From positions 30,442,001 to 30,506,000 of the forward strand of contig OZ116705.1 in NCBI GenBank assembly GCA_964199315.1: a stretch of DNA of 64,000 nucleotides, read 5' to 3'. This document shows, piece by piece, positions 2,861 through 26,502 of this stretch. The DNA is from Orbicella franksi. Lineage: Eukaryota. The position numbers and the translations under genes are program-made. Under the pieces are notes generated by a model. That model was not told the DNA's origin. It saw only the letters and a list, made by a program, of their open reading frames with translations, and did not search any database. The first letter of the stretch is position 1. Each line of letters opens with the position of its first letter.

Positions 2861-4134
2861 TTAAATATGTATCAATTTGAAGTTGACAAGGTAAATTAAC
2901 TACGGTGGCCAGGTTACCTTGATTATAAATATCTAGGGACTTAAATAAATCTACATGTGTTTTTAATCGGTGAAGACTGGATGCTGATTGCTCAATGTTG
3001 AATTAGAGCTTCGCCAGAATTAGCGTCAAAATATCTTTGACGTTTTTATGTTATCGATGATTTATGTTTTTCATTCACTGTCCTCTTTCATTTCCGACTA
3101 CTGCCGAGCGCGCGGTTCCGTATTAGCGAACCATACTGAGTAAGAAGTCTCATGATACGAAACAGTGCTCGGCAGTAGTCGGAAGCTGGGAGGAGCCGCC
3201 GAACACTTGATTGACGGTAGCGAAAAACGCATTTTTCGGTTGAGCTTTGAATTCTAGAGTCCGCATGTTATTGAAAGGCGCAGAAATGGTTTTACTTTGG
3301 CGGGAATAACTGAGTATTCTTCGTCACTTAACAACACTTTCTCGCAAAATGTCAAAGTGGCGATACAACTTCCCCGCGAGCAAACAGTCAACGATGAACA
3401 AACCACTGATTTCCTGTAATGACGATTTAACCAAAAGAAAGTTAAATAACGAAACAGATAAACTTCAGTGTTCGCTGAAGACTATACAATGCAAACCTTA
3501 CAGTTGTTTCAGAACTGAGTTAATTGAAACGAGAGGGATGCTAAGGAAAATACCTTACATTTAAAATCCATCAAATATTTCGCTAACACGCGATTGGTCT
3601 AAACGCGTCATGTGACTGAGTATGCTCCAGTTAAAACTGGGAAATATCCGAGTGATATTCCTCAGTTTTCAAAGTCCGCGTGTTGCGTGAATATTTGAAG
3701 CATAATAAACACAATAGCCTCCATTTGACTTTCAAAATACGCTGAAATATTTGCCCGTGGACATTATCTGTTCCTCGAAGCTCACAGTTTTCATCAGATT
3801 ATGTCCACAGACAAATATCCGAGCATATTTTCGCAGCAAATGAAGGCTATTGTTTATATAAATATGAAAGAGAGTACATCGTAAATAGGTTATCTTGAAC
3901 TGTTAAAATAAACTCTTAAATTGAAGTCTCAGGCTTTCATATAATCATAATGCTATTAATAAATAAGACCTTCTTACACTTACTGTACAAATCAAAATAT
4001 ACCATACAATCAATAATATTCGAAAAAGTGGTATCCTTTTGTATGGAAAGACTACCTTAAATCTTTCATCTTAGGGTATAACCATAAGCGGTTATACGCA
4101 ACGTCATGACTGAAGACTGTATGAAATCCTAACA

Positions 4135-5080: not shown

Positions 5081-8000
5081 CTATCTCGAGGTGTTCGGTT
5101 GTTCTTGGCTGGCTTTTCGTTCCTCTAGTCTTGCAAGTGCCGCATGGACACGGAAACTTAGCCTGTTCTCAAAGTCATACCCGCTAAAGGTATCCTGTTG
5201 TAAAAAAGGACAGATCGGAAGAAAAAAAAAAAACATTAAAATTAGATTGGTTATTGAATAAACTAGCCTGAAATGTCGGTCATCTCCCGCCCCGGGTTTC
5301 TCCTACCCGGGGGTAATGCTGAGGGCGCGAGAAAACTGACATTTCAGACTACATTGCTTGCAAAAAAATTTCGGACGTTTAATTTTCGAACTCTTTTTAT
5401 CTCATTTCGGACAAATTTCGGACGCTTCACTGAAACATAGCTGAAGTACATTTAAGTCACCAAACACGATTTAGACTGAAATAAAATCTGCGAAAATGAT
5501 AGTTATACTGCATCCTCAAGGTTTTACAGATGCACCGACGAGAAAAGAAGACGAATTTTATCAAGCCGTTACGTATCTCATGTGTTCTCTCAACTAGGGT
5601 TCGCTCCGTAAAGGAAACTAAGAGTTTTGGAGCTGCTTCAGAGTTAAATTCTGTATTGTAAATATTTCGGACACTTAAAAATTTCTTTACGCAAAGGTTG
5701 ACTTGTGGCAAGTCTAGGGTGGACTGACTGTCCCGTGGATAATAGACTGCTGGCAGTCTGTTTATCTCTCGAAATTCAGCAGAGGTTATGAGGAATGACG
5801 CTTTAGCGTAAAGGGGAATGGGACGAGACATGGGCGCCTTCTTCCCCACTCGGCAACCGCCATACTGCCCTTTTGCGTTTGCAATGACTAAACACTCGTC
5901 TAAGTGACCCTAAGAGAAAAAAACTGGCCGCCAGAAGACTACGTGGATAATGACATTAAGTGTAAAGTATGCACGAAAAAGAGTTCTACTTACCTTGACT
6001 CTTTTTAGTAGTTCTTCCCCTTTCGCGCTCATCTGAAAGTTCAAAACGTGTTTTTCTATGAGCATGGTTTCATTTGAGGATATGTAATAGCTTAAAATTC
6101 AAAAGCACTTTGCTTACCTTTTCATCCTGTGCATAAAGAACACCAAGTTCATAAGTAGCGAACGGAGGCACGTGAGGGTCTGGGGGACTGCGACCAGATT
6201 TGACCGCGGCATCCTGGAAATGCTGCCAATCAAACAAACACAATCGCACTTAAATGGCTTTTTTCGAACCACGTTGGTTTATACAGCCGCTGTCAGCCAC
6301 ACAGCTGCCGCTCAACTAGAGAGCAAGTTTGAACGGTCTTAAAATTTCGCTTCAATTTTCAGTCGTAACATTAAAAAAACGTACATCTATCATTCTAAGT
6401 TGCACCTACCTTGACAGCCATGTCAGTTTTCTTGAGGACTCGACAAGCTGACCCTTGAATAAGACACTTGAGAGGAATCAGATTCAAACTGACTTCACTG
6501 GCCTCTAGCGCTACAGAAAAAATAAAACAAATTAAGCAAATTTCACGTTGTTTCGTGTACTTGGAGTTGACAGGCGCTTCCTTTCGCGCGCTTAACCAGA
6601 AACATTCCATTCAGGTGACGTAGCTCTTTCGTGATCCGCCTCTGATTGGCTCTCGAATTTTCGCGCGTAAATAGCAACCAATCAAACTGTGAAGCTACGT
6701 TATCACTATTGTACGCGAAGGAGACAAGGGGTGCTTACCATTTACAAAAACCATCCGGTTGGAAATTTCAGGCATAAACATTAAACAATTAAATTGAACA
6801 TTGCGGGAGAGGGAATCGCTATAAAGTATATCCACATCAGCTAGAGAGACTTATAAGAGCAGAAAAATAGCATCAACCCAAATCACAGCCGATATTTTCT
6901 GAAGCTTCCCAAACGGAATGGCGCGAACCATTTTATTTTCCAACTGGAATTTCCGGTTTTCCCATGTAAATGGTAAGTACCCAAGTTCTCATGAAACTAA
7001 AATGTAAGTGGAAAATTCACCGTCATGGTTCGCGTGTTTTAAATCCACAACAACCCAGAATTTGGTCACTTCACGCTGTTTTGCAGAGCGATTTTAAAAG
7101 GTACCGATATGTATCTCGTGCTCATGCGGAGGCATTTTGCTGCCAACCAAAACCTAAAATTAGCGATATTTCACATCGCCGTAACAGTCTCCCTGAGCTT
7201 CCTAGCAAGTTTGAAGCCATTTCAATGCGTAGCATTTCTGCTGAGACACCGAATACGTGACGAAACTCAACTTGCGTCACGTAACACTGAGTGACCACAG
7301 GATATAGTGGGCTGAACAAAGGAAAGACTTACCAGAAAGAATCCTATTTAAGACAGTTTCGCTGCACGTGTAGAGCGCTCTCCAGACATACAGGAGCTCT
7401 AATGCAAGTAACAGACAGTCAGCTTCTGACGGAGGAGATTTCTTGTACATAGCAGCCTAAGAATAAAACACAAAAAACACTATGAGGAGCTTTTACAATG
7501 ACGTGATTAGATCATTAACCTCAGAATCTCGGTTAATAACTTACACAACTCGCTTAATTTTTTTTCAGTCTATGACGTGTTACAAATCAAGGCTTGGCAA
7601 CCAGCCCAACACATCTTTACCAACACCCAATCAAAATGACGACGTCATTCACACAGCCAATCAGATGTCACAGCTGCCAGTGTACCTTTCCCTGCCACTC
7701 GATTCACGTGACTTTTCCCGCGCTTTTCCAAAGTTTTGATTTGTCTGTTACGCCGTCACCTCCGGTGTGATTGGCTGTGATTCCTTTCGTTTGCAACAGT
7801 AATCATGAAAAAACCGCACCAACTGAAAAACAGCATGTTTATTTATTGCAGAAAGCTCACCTTCCTAACAATAAACTGCTCCAGAGGCGTTTTCTTCTTG
7901 ACAAATTTAGGGACTGATTTAAATTGCGCTTGAGCCTCTGTTGTGCTTCCTAAAATTCCTATAGTGACTGGACAAGAAGACAGCAACAATAATCTGTATC

Positions 8001-18572: not shown

Positions 18573-21500
18573 CATCCCATGGGATGTTTATCCGCGTTCT
18601 TAGCAGAATTTATTCTTAAATCTTGTGTAAATGACATTCAGTTGTGGAACAAGTTGTGTGAACTGAAATATAATTTGTGCCTCAGTTAAGATTTTTCTTT
18701 GTAACTTTGATGTGTTAATTGACTAGGTTACATTTTTGTGCATGTTGGAATAAAGAATTCCAGATTTCAATATTATGTTGGGTTTTTTTTTTCTTTGTTC
18801 AGGAATGACGTGACGCCCCCTTCCTTTATGGTTTGCACTTTCTCTTACAAGTCCTACCAGAAGCATATCACCAAGTCTAGGTGATATGCTTCTGGTACTA
18901 CTGATTCCAAGTGTCCTACGAAATCGCTCTTTTTTCAGGCCATTTTACTTACTGGTTAATAGTTTCAGTTGTGGGTCAACTAACACAAGTGATCTTGTGA
19001 CGATAAATTTCATGATCATTATTTTGATTTTGCTACCTGTGGATTTAGCTAAGAGGTCACCTGTTTTGTCAGTCACAGGTCTAGACTCGTGAGTCAATGA
19101 TTCACTGTTCAAATTTGCACGCTGGTTAGGCTGAATAGGACTCCTAAATAGTACTTCAGTTAGCTTAGATAGGACTTAAGTTAACCTGCATTATAAACAT
19201 TACTTCTGATGGCCTAAATGAGCACTTACCGGTACCCCTGTAGGTTATCTGCAATTTATTAGTGCTCTTGTTAGGTGATATAACCCTCCAGTCAGTCTGC
19301 ATATCACTCTGGTTAGTGTAAATATTCACTCAGCCGAGCCTGGATAATACTCAGGTTAGCCTGTTTGAGTTTTATACTCAATAAGGGTGCAAGTTACATA
19401 AAAGATAATACTTACTCTTTCCTCCACAATTTCTGTTACAAGATGCCAGACAGAGGCCACCTTATCCATGTGCTCTGCTAGTCGGTGCAGTATGAATGGC
19501 ATTAGCCCAAAGAACAGGGAGTGGGAAAAAAGATGAGGTTACCTTTGTCTTTTGCTCTACACTTCTCTCACTACTCCCGAACGCTAGTAGCATGACTAAC
19601 TGCCTAACTGAGTAGTAGTATGCAAGTTTTATAATCAGGGAAAATTTCAGCTTGATGAAAAAAATACAACAAGAGATATAGCTGCCCAACCATAATTCTA
19701 TTTTACATTCCTGACCCAGGCCTTAAACTGCTTGAGTTTATGAATCTTGCAAATGTTTTAAGCCTGCAGGGTGGGTAAAAAGAAAGAAGAACACTGAAAA
19801 TGTCCGGCAATATGAAACACTAAAAGTTCAAGACATTTATTGACAAAAATTACTGCACAAGAGTACATTTTGAAACTTACTTAAAATCCACATGATTTAC
19901 ATTGTGTGTAAGTTATATTAAACTTTATTGATACGCTTTTTGATACTAGTTTAGGAAAGTTTAATTTTAACTCTACTTAGAGCAGAAAATCATGATTGCT
20001 TGGAAGTATTCTGCAAATAATTGTAATTTTTCAGAACTGTTAGGAAAATGAATATTAGCAAGGTGGACATGGGACAGGAATTTAGTATTCATTCCACACA
20101 TTTTTCAAAGATAAAATACTGCTTATTAACCTTTCATGCAATACAATAAACAACATTATTTCATGACCAAGACAGTTGGCAGGGCCAATAACTCAAATCA
20201 ATCAACCACATTGTTTTATTACTGGTCCAATATTTTCTACAAATCAGTCAATCAACAACTTAAGAAATACACCAATAAACATCTTAGCCCTGTGGGCCAT
20301 GCTAGCTTGAGACCCTATATAAAAGAATGTGTAATCCCAAAAATATCCATACCCCTCCCACATAGGGTTTTTGTTTTTACCCCCACCCACCCCCCTTCCT
20401 GAACTAGACAATCGAGGTAATCCCTGGAAAATAAATATCCAAGAAGTGCAAGTTCACTTTGATTCTCCTGGTTTTATAAAAATCTCCAAATACACATACT
20501 TTGATGGTTTTACATGATTTACAAAACACCCTGAAAGAAAGCGCACACTAAAAGCTGTATTTCTATGACTTGATAAAAACACAGAACTAGCAGGAGTTGT
20601 TGACGTAATAATGGCACAAGTAAAGAGAATTTACATTTTGACGATCAAAGTAAACAAGTTCTTTCCTTTTTTGATTGCGTTGATTTCTCAAATAAATAGA
20701 ACACATGTTCTCTGTGTTTCTATCTAGTCACAGAATCACTCGAGAAAGTTTGGGAGAACTTAAAAAAATAGCCTATCAGCTCATGTTCCCACAGCATTTC
20801 TTGCTCTGCCAAACTTCCACTCGTGTTTCCATAACTTGATAGAAAAAACGGACCATGGGCATTCTAAAGTATTTTTCTGTGCCTTACAGAAATGAGGCAA
20901 TATGGGGCAAACAACAAATAACGGGAGAAATCATGTAAATATTGACGCATTGTTACAGTAACTATAAAACCGTCAAACTAGAATTTATAATAATTCTTTT
21001 ACATTCTTGCTAGTTAGCTCCACAGTGGGATACTCTGTGTAATACATGTGTGAGACACTACAGTGTAACATGCTCTCATAAATTTTTTATGTGCTATCTT
21101 AACACTATGATAATTTTATTGTCAAATGATGTAATAGTGGAACTCATACTTATTGACCAAGTACACATGCTCAAAGACTGATTTGACCAGGAATGAAGAC
21201 AGAATAAATTTTGTAACAAATCTTTCTGGACCGCAAAAAGCAGCCAATATGAGACTACGAAAATAACAATCATAATTATTAAAGTTGTGTTTACATTTAG
21301 ACCACACTCTAAGAATGCCAGCAATCTTTCTAGATGATCAATTCCAAACAATCCCCTTGTAATACAATTAAAAATACTGTGGAATCCCGATTTTTGAACC
21401 TCCAAGGGAAATGAAAATTGGTTTGAAAAATCACCTAGTTTGAGAAATCTGGAGTAAACTTGCAGTGTTCTACTGAGGGAAGTAAAACAGGTTTTGGTTC

Positions 21501-21618
21501 AAGTTATCATGAGGTTTGAACAAGTGAAGATCTGAGAAATCGGGATTCCACAATAAGTTGCAAGATTGTTTTACGGTAAATTAAAATAATTTGATCACCC
21601 TAGGTAGCAAAAACTTGG

Positions 21619-24600
21619 TTAACAACAGCCTGTCTTGTGTGGTTCAGCGGAAGGAATATTCTTAAATTCCTGTGAGCTTGTCACTGATGTACTGTTTGTT
21701 AATGTTATTGAGTCGGGGTCCTTTGGAATACTGTCAAAGTTATTTGCCTTTTCATTCTCTAGAATCTGCAAGGAGAAAGATCAAAAACATTCACTTTCTA
21801 TCAATCAAGAAACAAACTGACAAATTAGAGGTAAAGTCTGCATGTGAGCTAAGTGACCCATCAGGCAGGAGCTTATTCCAGTTTCTCTAGCATGAAGCGA
21901 CTAGGAGTATTTCTACTCTCCCCCTCCCCCCCCCCCCCCCCCCACCAGGATATCAAGATGCAAAACTGTGATGAAGCACCTTTAAAGGTCTACAGTAAGA
22001 TTACAGTGTCATGGCTAAGAACACAACACAAGTTTTAAAAGAACTGTGCTCTGGTCTGAAAACCATGCACGTTAGCCCAGAGGTTTATCAATATTCTCAT
22101 GTACCTTTGCCACAAGATATTTTGCTGCCTCAGAAATGTTTATGTCCTCTTTGGCTGATGTCTCAAACCAAGTATTAAACCCCTTGTCTGAACAATATTC
22201 ATCCATTTGACTTGCATTGTTAACTAGACCCTCCTTGGCTTGATCGCACTGCAGGAAAAAAGAAAATATTGTGATCAACAACAAACTTTTCTTGTGTTAC
22301 CTGACAACGTGATGACGGGCATGTTTAAAACAAGAAATGGTGAAAAAGCACTACGGTTAGCCTATAAAATATCACTGACCTGACAGCAGTTAGCTCTCTA
22401 TGATAGTTTGGGTTACCCTTACAGACACCCGCATCCCACATTGACTCTTAATCATAGCACCATCATTTCGTAATTTTGCCATTTTGTGTTTTAAACACAC
22501 CCTGTGATGACCTATCGATTAAGGGATGACATAAACAAGCTAACACTTCCATAACCCTGCCCTGATTATTTGAGAAAGATGTTGCACCACAAAGCCAAGT
22601 TGTGAAACAGCCTAGCATCCAATTTGCTACAAGCGTAATTATCCCTAAATATTTTCAAACTAAACCATGTCATTAAAGTTTTTGATAGAAATTTTACATG
22701 GTGTCCATGTAAAGCAGCTTCTATTTCTTTAATTTTGTCCTTTTATATTGAAATTTTTTATCATGTTAAAATAAAATTATTAATCTATCTATCTGAACAT
22801 CTCCTACACATATGAAAAGATTCCCCGAGTAAACAGAATACTGGCAGTCTCTGCATGCTCCATTCTACCCTCACATGAGAGATTCAACGAGAAGAAAAAT
22901 TACAAAATGATGATCTAGTCCAGCAGTGATCCTTGTACTAGCATTGAATGGTTATTGTGTGAAAGAAATGGGTAACTTACTAACAGACACAATTAGTAAA
23001 AGTTGCTGACACAAGACACCAGTCGAGTTACCTGATGTAATTTGTTATTCACTGCCTATGTGGATAAAACCCTAGTGTGTAACCATTCAAATGAAAGCTA
23101 TTGAGCAGTACTTTCATGTGGTACTGTTTACTATGCTGTACAAGGTGGTTCTAACTTTCAAGTCTGTGTAAATCCTAGTTTGACTTGAGAAACAAGAAAA
23201 AAACTGGGTCAAGTGTCATCTTGCAGTAGCTCGCGGGAGTGTTACTGATGATGAAACAAAAGACAAAAAGTTATATTGTCACCAGTAACAATCCCAGAAG
23301 CGATTAAGATAAAGATCACCCTAGATTTTTCTTGTTTCTCAAGTGGCAAATTCAGATGAAAGCTATTGAGTAGTACTTTCATGTGGTACTGTTTGTTATG
23401 CTGCATGTGGTGGTTCTAACTTTTAAGTCGGCAGATGAAATTCCTGTGTGTAACCATTTAAATAACAGCTATTCAGCAGTATTTCATGTGGTATTTGCTT
23501 TTCATTATGACGTACACGGTGGTTATAATGCTTACATCTGTGAGTGAATCCTACTCTGTGGAATTCTTAAATTCTTAAATGAGCAGAACTTTCTTGTAGC
23601 ATTACTGTGGAACTTTGAGAGTCAACAAACCTTGTTTGCTAATAGAACAACAGGAATTGGAGCTCCATTAGGAAGCATAACTTTACCATCCAAGTCATTC
23701 TTCCATTTCTGCACAGCTTCAAATGTAGACGCTCTTGTGACATCAAACACAATGAAAGCTCCAACCGCCTCCTTATAATAAACCTGCCAATTAAATTAAT
23801 TCTGCATGTTTTATATGTACTATGTTACCATTTCCTCTTAATAATTACATTATGTTAAAGTTGTCTCTTCAAACTCCCAGATGTGGAATTCCGTAGCTGA
23901 ATTTGATCATCATGTGATCAAAAATTGACCAATGAAAAATTGACCAGCAAAAAATGGAAAATGAAGATTGTCTCCAAGCCTAAGCTACAGTATACTTATA
24001 GAAGCTAGGTGTCACTGGATGGGCTGCTCCTAGACAGTAAAAATTGGTTGCATGTGGCCTTTGTAGTGTGAGCAGGTGGCTCCTGTCATGCAGAAACCAG
24101 AAATCATGTAATCATAGACTACGAAGCTATGATTGTTATAGGGTTTTCTAGCATGTTTCAAAATCCTACCATATTTTTGTGCTGTACACAATTGCAAAGA
24201 AGTTGTCTAATTGAATAAATATACACAAAACAGTTTGTGTCAAAGAGTTGCTATACATTTGTTACATATACAGCCAGGTTGTACCATTCTTAACAAGACC
24301 TTGACTTCTGTCTTTTGAATAAGAGATTACTGTGGTAAAACTTACTCGTGTCATGTTCCCAAATCTTTCTTGTCCTATTTCCAAGAAATAAAATCAAACC
24401 ATGTTATAACATTGCTCACAAAGCCACACTGTCAAAGAGGGTGGCAAAGGGTTTATGCAAGACACATGATGAGGGCTAAAATTAGCGTGTGATGCGTGAA
24501 AGTAAATGTGGCTGAATGCATATGTGATGCATGAATTTTGTTGAAATTTGTGCATGAAATGGGGAGACAACCTCCATTTTCTGCCCTTATCAAACCCAAA

Positions 24601-25725
24601 ATGGCCAGAGCTATTCTTCTTAGTTCACCCTGTTTGATTGGAAAACATCGTAAGGATTCTGTTTTACAACAGTTGGTCAAACTAGTCAACCTGATAAAAT
24701 GGAAAGCAACCTTAGTGACGTTGGAGATGGGTTAAGGTCACACTCGCCGAAAGCTGGAACGCCTAGGGTAAGAGGAAGAAGGGATGGCCAACAAAAACAT
24801 GGCAGTGGGGCCTGGGAGCAGACATTAGGAGATCAGGGCTGAACAGGAGTCAGCTAGAGAGACCCAGGACAGAGATGACTAGAGGACTCTTGTTGGCCAC
24901 CTATGCTCCAGGAGGGGTACTAGGCGCAAGTATCTATAGTGAGTCATGTTACGTTTTTGAGGACCCCTTTAATACCGACACCCACCCCCAAGCCCCCCTA
25001 AATCTGACCTCATTTTACAGCCAGCGGGGGGGGGTTAGATCTGGGGGTTCCATTGTGTTAATCAAGTAGACATTTATGAAAGTCATACAAAAGGATGTGA
25101 CAAAAGTTTACCTGCAATATCCCATAGCTGTAAACGAACAAGTGTATCAGTGTCCCAGTTTATAACCTTGAGCGCGAAATCAACTCCAATGTATTCAAAG
25201 TCAAGGTCAACAACAACAACAAGTTAAACAATAAATAACAACAGCGGCATCTTTGAGCTTGATTTCATGTCAGGTGCGACCATTAATCGAGTTAATAAAT
25301 TGATGGGGGAAAGCCTGTTTCTGTATAGGGTGATTAAAATTTCTACAACGGCCGAAATCATGCTAGGGAAAACTAGAAATATGCAGACATCGAATAGCTA
25401 CAACTAATTGACCTCATCAAGCTTGTAACTAACTAAAGAAGACAAGCGTTGACTGGACAACATTTGGAAATTTTTTTAAGAAAGGATATTGTAGCTCTGT
25501 AGTGTACAGAGAAAAATTGATGAACATAGCGCTTAATGATGCTAGTTTTTCCAACACCGAGGTCTCCTATTACCAAAACTTTGAAGAGAAACTCCTTCTT
25601 CTCCCCGGACGATTCCTGCGAAAGAGAGAAAAAAAACAATCAAAAATTGCCTCCCAGCCCCGCTGAATATTGTTGTCAATCGTTTGTAAAGTATTGTTTT
25701 TGAAAAAGTACATCGAACGTACCAT
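21619..25725 (-). CDS. RAB32: Ras-related protein Rab32/Rab38-like, 7 coding exons, 226 aa
   Basis: Exons: 25723-25725 (ATG only, least certain), 25490-25615, 25112-25190, 24346-24374, 23631-23783, 22105-22248, 21619-21765; total 681 nt. Motifs: GDLGVGKT P-loop, subfamily-diagnostic DFALK and WDIAGQE, NKCD, ETSAK, C-terminal GCC prenylation site. Cannot distinguish Rab32 from Rab38, which is a vertebrate duplication. Confidence 0.92.
21829..21930 (-). mobile_element. SINE 3' fragment
   Basis: ggtaaagtctgcatg...tctagcatgaagcgactaggagtatttctactc matches the SINE tail. Confidence 0.75.
23065..23540 (+). repeat. ~106-bp repeat array with an inserted MITE (23183-23344)
   Basis: Repeat units as at 4135. 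The insert has TIRs acttgagaaacaagaaaaa ... tttttcttgtttctcaagt. Confidence 0.7.
24735..24930 (+). mobile_element. Degenerate 3' end of an RTE-clade LINE
   Basis: Frameshifted pieces (G-R-R-x-G-W-P-T-K-T-W, QLER, QDR, ending ggccacctatgctccagg) resemble the RTE ORF C-terminus GRPxxTWRR...QLERxAQDRxxWRxLVxxLC. Confidence 0.55.
25191..25489 (-). other. U12-type (minor spliceosome) AT-AC intron in Rab32/38, 299 nt
   Basis: 5' site ATATCCTTT at 25489-25481, branch motif CCTTGAC at 25206-25200 and terminal AC at 25192-25191. Removal restores YRAT-IGVDFALK. Confidence 0.92.
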
Positions 25726-26502
25726 AATCAGCTGTAGAAAGTGTAAATATAGTCACTCGTAATAGCCGTACATCAGGAGGAAGCCACCATGTTGTCATGT
25801 GATTGTACGCGATATATTACTGTATTTGATTGGTTGGAGAATTTCGGAGGCAAGAGTCTGGCAGTTATAAGCTTGTTTTTTATTGGCCTGTGAAGATTTT
25901 CGCGATTCCACGAAAATATTCGAAAATATGCGAAATTCCACGACTTTCGCGAAATCCGTAGACCATATAGACCGAACAATTCTGCGAGATTTCATTTTAA
26001 TAAAGCGTTCTGCCTTTTTTTGTAAGTTTAGTTGCTAGAACAAGGAAAAATTCTGGCGGGGGCAGGGAGGGTGGGGGTGGATATAGTCATGGGGTACTTT
26101 GAGATATTTTGTATTGCCGATCGAGAGTGCTCACCCTCATATTTAATTTACACTAAAAGTTGCAAATTGCAAAACGGGTTCTATTACGTGAAACTCAAGC
26201 ATACGAATGCTTTTCAATAATGTTACGCTAAATGTTTGTCAGAAAATGTCAGTTGTTCGAATTTATTACTCAGCCCTTGACCAAAGTCAAGTATTTTAAT
26301 AAAATATGTACTTGTTGTTCGGTAGTTTTCTACCATCCTGCTTGCATTACTGCCAAAATGCTAGAAACGGAAGGTGCGAAAAAAGCTTGTGCTCTATAAT
26401 TTTCAGCCTCAGCAAATTTCAATTTAACTTTCCATTATTATTTAGCAGACGGAAGCGGGATTTTTTTGTAGCTGTAGAAAGCGTTTCTGTTTCAAGATAT
26501 AT

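Follow-up and report, generated by a model that had tools for sequence, protein, structure and literature searches.

Introns of the U12-type with AT-AC termini have been described, e.g. in the human NOP2 (P120) gene and in voltage-gated sodium channel genes. They share a donor reading /ATATCCTT, a terminal AC, phase 0, and a TCCTTRAC box that is located 10-15 nucleotides (nt) from the acceptor, without a polypyrimidine tract. Typically, they stand singly among U2-type neighbours. We analysed a stretch of 64,000 nt of the coral Orbicella franksi (contig OZ116705.1, positions 30,442,001 to 30,506,000; called the window throughout, with all coordinates counted from its first nucleotide), which contains a Rab32/38 gene on the minus strand. 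Intron 2 of this single-copy gene shares the features listed above, and we are highly confident that it is a genuine AT-AC intron that depends on the minor, U12-dependent spliceosome. It is an ordinary minor-spliceosome intron, i.e. it belongs to a known class, has textbook signals, and requires no new mechanism. It differs from the known cases in its host gene and in that the U6atac small nuclear RNA (snRNA) of the coral is a "CC variant".

Intron 2 (25191-25489, minus strand) has a length of 299 nt and interrupts the reading frame in phase 0, after the codon of the switch I threonine, i.e. at YRAT|IGVDF. It begins with ATATCCTTTC (in a longer excerpt, ATATCCTTTCTT) and ends with GACCTTGACTTTGAATAC. 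Its assignment draws on the sequence, on RNA junctions, and on the signals of its relatives. The 5′ splice site, ATATCCTTT (25481-25489), fits the consensus /[AG]TATCCTT. The branch-point box CCTTGAC is found at 25200-25206, and its A at 25201, 11 nt from the 3′ end (position -11), is the putative branch point. Extended by one nucleotide, aCCTTGAC matches 7 of the 8 positions of the TCCTTRAC consensus. The box is directly followed by TTTGAATAC, and there is no polypyrimidine tract between it and the acceptor. The terminal AC (25191-25192) is seen in the sequence, in the RNA, and in the alignment of the relatives. The join between exons 2 and 3 is ambiguous by 2 nt, so that AT-AT, TA-CA, and AT-AC boundaries would all give an identical mRNA; AT-AC is the option that fits the consensus.

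The donor motif alone is not unusual, as [AG]TATCCTT occurs six times in the window, compared with 6.7 times in shuffled versions of it. The significance of intron 2 results from the exact fit to the homology break, from the RNA junction, and from the conservation of the signals in orthologues. At the break, phase 0, a branch box at the proper distance, and a matching AC coincide. A second U12-like candidate, GTATCCTTT at 4031 on the plus strand, is followed 2.0 and 2.4 kb downstream by CCTTGAC-AG partners, located at 6011 and 6426, respectively. It was rejected as a chance match because neither flank contains coding sequence.

The original prediction, made from the letters of the DNA, held that homology to Rab32/38 stops at YRAT and resumes at IGVDFALK with no GT-AG pair, that a U12-type AT-AC intron fills the gap, and that this intron splits the switch I effector loop. 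All elements of the homology break were found where they had been predicted, and no in-frame GT...AG pair keeps the Rab homology across the break between exons 2 and 3. The U12-type identity likewise stands, with both signals fitting the consensus, the junction present in RNA, and genes for the four minor-specific snRNAs in the genome. The position of the intron also proved to be as claimed, directly after the threonine codon and before IGVDF. The alignment of exon 2 to human Rab32 reaches ...HYRAT, the threonine of which is located 18 residues past the P-loop threonine, and which we take to be the switch I (G2) threonine of Ras-like GTPases. Therefore, intron 2 sits between the G2 threonine and the RabF1 motif IGVDF.

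To describe splicing, four RNA runs were aligned to positions 21400-25900, and competing junctions were listed at a threshold of 3%. The junction GCTACA^ATTGGA that had been proposed for the spliced mRNA was found in 41 reads (26 + 15) with 32 start positions in X23, a run of raw polyA reads; the 299 nt that it leaves out lie between 25188 and 25488. The same joint of exons 2 and 3 is repeated in a contig of run X10 with a depth of 3747. In run X1, loose ends at 25190 and 25488 continue into the sequence of the respective other exon. The other five junctions of the gene were also seen in RNA at the predicted coordinates. At the threshold used, the RNA runs gave no competing junction between exons 2 and 3. 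An unspliced X10 contig (record 15) spans 25161-25498 with one difference, and the sole difference listed for X10 in this region is at 25266; an unspliced X1 contig spans 25161-25517. These contigs agree with the assembly, and therefore the termini of the intron are not an assembly error.

To characterise the intron in other genomes, we searched with the open reading frame (ORF) of exon 2, and 120 short genomic ORFs were returned. After YRAT, 5 of them continue with ISF, 26 with VSF or VSL, 21 with another sequence beginning with V, and 68 directly with IGVDF. As "VS" is ambiguous with respect to the intron class (the U2-type donor GTRAGT also encodes Val-Ser), the DNA was fetched where possible. 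At YRAT|IGVDF, two corals with protein identities of 98% (L026) and 96% (L025) to the window have AT-AC introns, i.e. ATATCCTTT...GCCTTGACTTTGCATAC with 305 nt and ATATCCTTT...GCCTTGACTTTACATAC with 350 nt, respectively. The branch box CCTTGAC is invariant in both, and the three AT-AC introns have the tail CCTTGACTTTnnATAC in common. When the three were aligned, only two signal blocks remained conserved once L025, the interior of which has diverged, was included.

U12-type introns with GT-AG termini, i.e. with GTATCCTT and a TTCCTTAAC-like box, were found at the same position in five further loci. They are GTATCCTTTG...TTTCCTAAC-N10-AG in a hexacoral-like sequence with 87% identity (L008), GTATCCTTTC...TTCTTTAAC...AG in an octocoral-like sequence (L011), GTATCCTT...TTCCTTA[AC]C...AG in two mollusc-like sequences that are closest to a snail protein with 84-85% identity (L013 and L010), and GTATCCTTGA...TTTCCTTAAC-N17-AG in the calcareous sponge Sycon ciliatum (L027, an NCBI record), which has the same seven-exon layout. 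L011 shares an identical exon 3, and an almost identical exon 2, with named octocoral proteins. The snail Biomphalaria pfeifferi (L012) has an intron at the same position with GTGAGT and a polypyrimidine tract, i.e. of the U2-type, and Blattella germanica (L009) has no intron at YRAT|IGVDF. The same holds for several ORFs of the arthropod and vertebrate types, e.g. the vertebrate-type P0265, which is unbroken from its Met through WDIAG, and the intron appears to be missing from vertebrate-type Rab32/38 sequences.

The original prediction had left open whether the intron is ancestral. Its presence as a U12-type intron at the identical position in a sponge indicates that both the position and the U12 character are ancient, and it is U2-type or missing in some bilaterians. 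In the simplest history, a GT-AG U12-type intron would have been present before sponges, cnidarians, and bilaterians diverged, and a switch from GT-AG to AT-AC would have occurred in the lineage of the stony corals, with the direction of the change being deduced. The switch is placed there because the Orbicella-like and Porites sequences are AT-AC, and a sea-anemone-like fragment has VSL. Elsewhere, the intron would have been converted to the U2-type (snail) or lost (insects and other arthropods, and apparently vertebrates). U12 introns are classically known to undergo a subtype switch, conversion to U2, or loss (Bartschat & Samuelsson 2010, PMC2846911), and all three are represented at this one position. 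Compared with the published fates (Burge, Padgett & Sharp 1998; PMC2846911), nothing is different in kind, and the locus is a compact new example that extends from sponge to coral. Cnidarian U12 introns have been known since 1998, according to work cited in PMC2396436 and PMC2846911.

The coral genome was searched with Rfam models for the minor-specific snRNAs. It contains two genes for U11 (90.5 and 88.3 bits), two for U12 (100.3 and 94.2 bits), two for U6atac (113 and 110.6 bits), and one for U4atac (54.2 bits), all of them full length and above the Rfam gathering scores. The 5′ end of U11, UAAAAGGGCC, and the branch-binding box of U12, GUAAGGAAAAU, are canonical, and they can pair, respectively, with intron 2's 5′ splice site and its branch-point box. 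Both U6atac genes (L003:1501-1628 and L004, i.e. G000:C3:10958990-10959117 and C3:10892305-10892432) read GAGCCGAGAGAAGG instead of the Rfam consensus GAAAGGAGAGAAGG, with GCC replacing AAG at positions 12-14, and there is no canonical copy in the coral genome. We rejected the GCC change as a novel anomaly: it is the "CC variant", which has already been reported in cnidarians, Trichoplax, a sponge, and several protists (Lopez et al. 2008, PMC2396436). How this variant pairs with unchanged ATATCCTT donors is left unexplained in that study.

From the established U12 pathway, the following mechanism can be proposed. The U11/U12 di-snRNP would recognise ATATCCTTT and CCTTGAC jointly, the A at -11 would form the lariat, and U4atac/U6atac.U5 would finish catalysis, joining the codon of Thr43 to that of Ile44. 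A functional Rab32/38 mRNA would always require the removal of intron 2, as the unspliced form would encode no more than the P-loop and 18 junk residues before it runs into a premature stop. Read-through gives ...YRAT-ISFLKKISKCCPVNACLL-stop, a truncated product of 61 amino acids, in line with the stop that the original prediction had foreseen upon retention. The retained form would probably be degraded by nonsense-mediated decay.

Several observations weigh against this interpretation. We infer the dependence on the minor spliceosome from the signals alone, and the same applies to the A of CCTTGAC as the branch point. The branch box has an A instead of the consensus T before CCTT, and a G at the R position; it falls within the TCCTTRAC consensus, yet the fit is imperfect. 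The GCC variant of the AAGGA box makes the textbook pairing of U6atac with the 5′ splice site (UCCUU) weak, i.e. -0.9 kcal/mol compared with -8.2 kcal/mol for the equivalent box. With regard to the relatives, the taxa of L008, L010, L011, and L013, which come from ENA assemblies, were assigned by protein similarity alone, the sea-anemone-like sequence that reads VSL after YRAT is a fragment, and the AT-AC character of Porites lobata was judged from a read-through protein model. As to the fate of the unspliced form, any retention signal consists of a handful of reads in the single run X23, and the two contig-based runs have unspliced contigs of low depth (19-57) for all introns alike, which possibly originate from DNA or nuclear RNA.

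AT-AC introns that are removed by the major spliceosome exist, and the terminal dinucleotides alone do not settle the class of an intron, so that a rare AT-AC intron spliced by the U2-dependent machinery has to be considered for intron 2. Such introns have AT[AG]AGT-like 5′ splice sites and a polypyrimidine tract. In contrast, intron 2 has a perfect ATATCCTTT, CCTTGAC at -11, and no polypyrimidine tract from the box to the acceptor, and its GT-AG orthologues carry GTATCCTT and TTCCTTAAC, which makes removal by the major spliceosome very improbable. The chance that an artefact of sequencing or assembly produced the AT and AC ends, or that the locus is a pseudogene copy, is negligible, and nothing was found in favour of either. 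The intron and its ends are reproduced in the unspliced contigs of the RNA runs, and identical ends occur in two other assemblies; the gene is single-copy, all six junctions are present in its transcripts, and its frame is open over 226 codons.

Another question is whether intron 2 has a function as a throttle, i.e. whether slow or conditional minor splicing limits the output of Rab32/38, e.g. under stress via the level of U6atac. Such a role would account for the persistence of the intron since the ancestor of sponges and eumetazoans. On average, the splicing of U12 introns is slower than that of U2 introns, and their retention is more frequent. In X23, the depth in the bin that lies wholly within intron 2 (25326-25476) is 2.75, whereas eleven clean bins within introns 3, 4, and 5 have 0-0.09 and exons about 35-48, so that intronic coverage is seen at intron 2 alone. 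These few reads of one run are suggestive of a retention of intron 2, the one intron affected, in about 5% of the transcripts. The conservation of the U12 signals at one position from sponge to coral is also compatible with a throttle, as is the apparent organisation of three alternative exons around the same U12 site in a mollusc-like genome (see below). In contrast, about 95% of the transcripts are spliced at intron 2 in the RNA examined, so any limitation would be mild, and the contig-based runs have no excess of unspliced intron 2 over the other introns. In addition, the gene is still present where the intron was converted or lost, i.e. in a snail, in arthropods including insects, and apparently in vertebrates, as expected of a dispensable relic. 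Taken together, a regulatory role of intron 2 is weakly hinted at, and a functional throttle is unlikely.

The mollusc-like locus L010 (7900-13450; ENA ERZ25073814, ctg9301), the Rab32 of which is closest to that of a snail, contains three tandem homologues of exon 2, i.e. AGGGEKKEHLYKILVIGELGTGKTS...YRAT, AFAKKKRLLKLLIIGDPCAGKSS...TKPT, and ASAKKERIVKVLIIGEVCVGKTS...YKMT. Each copy is preceded by a U2-like cag acceptor and ends at a U12-type donor GTATCCTT, and these three are the only GTATCCTT motifs in 16.3 kb. A single shared U12 acceptor, TTCCTTAAC-N10-AG, is located ahead of the exon with IGVDF. The layout looks like a set of mutually exclusive P-loop/switch I exons, with exclusivity enforced by the incompatibility of U2 and U12 splice sites. 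It resembles the U2/U12 mutually exclusive exons of the JNK/MAPK8-10 type; in L010 it is known from DNA alone, and it is absent from the coral window. Mutually exclusive isoforms of exon 2 in named species were considered and rejected: the listed isoforms of Tubulanus and Branchiostoma differ in their N-terminal or C-terminal parts, and a standard exon 2 is present in each of the named proteins retrieved.

The original prediction had also stated that predictors restricted to GT-AG introns will mis-model the gene, and had left open whether the intron is already catalogued. The first point was borne out by P0279 ("unnamed protein product, partial [Porites lobata]"), which runs through the U12 donor and reads ...HYRAT-ISFARFKSTGKFAEHILFNHSPTY-VINWD... 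(YRAT-ISFARFK...), with ISF being the translation of ATATCCTTT and IGVDFALK being lost. The transcript-derived P0280 is otherwise identical and has the right YRAT|IGVDF join. The RefSeq models are correct for Orbicella, Pocillopora verrucosa, Acropora muricata, and Oculina patagonica. The RefSeq protein "ras-related protein Rab-38-like [Orbicella faveolata]" (P0274) is identical to the spliced model at 225 of 226 residues, the sole difference being V61I. It includes the YRAT|IGVDF join, and therefore the intron is already implicit in public annotation, in which its class is not flagged. A literature search retrieved no paper that links Rab32 or Rab38 to U12-type or minor introns or to the minor spliceosome, and none that mentions this intron. 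The intron is absent from human-centred lists because vertebrate-type Rab32/38 genes appear to lack it. A further protein model, P0321 (DgyrCDS8815 of Dimorphilus gyrociliatus), has 26 extra in-frame residues (ILFFKVSIVWEF...) between YRAT and IGVDF; judged from the protein, the insert looks like an unrecognised short non-GT intron.

The V61I difference corresponds to a single nucleotide polymorphism at position 25139, at which the assembly has a C on the plus strand (Val61) and all reads of three RNA runs have a T (Ile61). Ile61 is also present in the Orbicella faveolata RefSeq protein and in all other coral and sea-anemone proteins compared. Val61 reflects either a difference between strains or species or an allele that is rare.

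The complete gene (21619-25725, minus strand) was reconstructed from a six-frame scan and the junction sequences. It has seven exons and a coding sequence of 681 nt, and encodes 226 amino acids. Exon 1 closes with the 3 nt of the start codon ATG (25723-25725); the junction 25723|25615 was found in 22 X23 reads. An in-frame stop is located eight codons upstream of the ATG, and the 5′ untranslated region (UTR) reaches roughly to position 25790. Intron 1 (25616-25722) has 107 nt, is a GT-AG intron of the U2-type, and is followed by exon 2 (25490-25615), the acceptor of which reads ...ctttcgcag. Exon 2 encodes the region from the P-loop to the switch I threonine (ESSGE...GDLGVGKTS...HYRAT) and translates to ESSGEKKEFLFKVLVIGDLGVGKTSIIKRYVHQFFSVHYRAT. 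Exon 3 (25112-25190; IGVDFALK...WDIA(G), translation IGVDFALKVINWDTDTLVRLQLWDIA) comprises the RabF1 motif as well as the beginning of switch II, and closes at a GTAAAC donor. Downstream of intron 3 (24375-25111, 737 nt) follow exon 4 (24346-24374, 29 nt, (G)QERFGNMTR), intron 4 (23784-24345, 562 nt), exon 5 (23631-23783, VYYKEAVGAF...VVLLANK), intron 5 (22249-23630, 1382 nt), exon 6 (22105-22248, CDQAKEG...ETSAK...LVAK), intron 6 (21766-22104, 339 nt), and the coding part of exon 7 (21619-21765), which ends with ...KTGCC and the stop codon TAA (21621-21619). The 3′ UTR runs on below 21404. Introns 1, 3, 4, 5, and 6 and exons 4 and 6 are supported by sequence and RNA, and exon 5 also by matches to structures. 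AT-AC ends are unique to intron 2 within the gene, as introns 1, 3, 4, 5, and 6 are all GT-AG.

The spliced translation has the Ras-like G-domain motifs GDLGVGKTS, YRAT, WDIAGQE, LANKCD, and ETSAK, and the cysteines for prenylation are present at its C-terminus (...KTGCC). In a comparison with solved structures, exon 5 scored 82.7 bits with Rab32, 79 with Rab38, and 62.8 with Rab7L1, and the next Rab had 28.5 bits. The order was the same for exon 2, i.e. Rab32, Rab38, and then Rab7L1/Rab29, and those orthologues that have names are labelled Rab-32 or Rab-38-like. The coral protein is thus of the same GTPase subfamily as human RAB32, RAB38, and RAB29 (RAB7L1), with which it shares the switch II motif WDIAGQE and the C-terminal CC. 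The human genes are paralogues of one another, whereas the coral has one gene. Human RAB32 and RAB38 are said to have only three exons. The next genomic matches to exon 2 have 47-54% identity, and these other Rabs were excluded as paralogues that share the intron, as none of the 8 loci examined has an intron at Thr|Ile.

Three short stretches, 23059-23170 and 23363-23513 in intron 5 and 21853-22003 in intron 6, are covered by RNA at a very high depth that reaches about 100,000 in the contig runs. These stretches, including the highly expressed repeat near 23060-23170 that intron 5 holds, carry numerous "goes back" joints as well as numerous loose ends. They resemble a dispersed repeat that is abundant and transcribed, or a small RNA-like element, separate from the expression of the Rab gene.

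For gene annotation, the results mean that the switch I/RabF1 region of coral Rab32/38 comes out damaged when a gene finder accepts GT-AG introns only, and a model that includes the AT-AC intron is advised for comparative and functional work. In a broader view, the U12 intron may have persisted for over 600 million years as a minor-spliceosome gate on the output of Rab32, and thus on the biogenesis of lysosome-related organelles, phagosomes, and, in corals, perhaps symbiosomes, with a co-option for the mutually exclusive choice of three exons in the mollusc-like lineage. We regard this view as highly doubtful; if it were true, the mollusc-like genome would produce Rab32 isoforms with differing nucleotide and effector properties. 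A survey in 2008 did not find minor snRNAs in Acropora millepora (PMC2396436). In contrast, the results presented here indicate that stony corals have a complete and working minor spliceosome. For the Rab32/38 family, a single codon boundary exhibits every known fate of a minor intron, i.e. retention, subtype switch, conversion, and loss, and can serve both as an evolutionary marker and as a teaching example.

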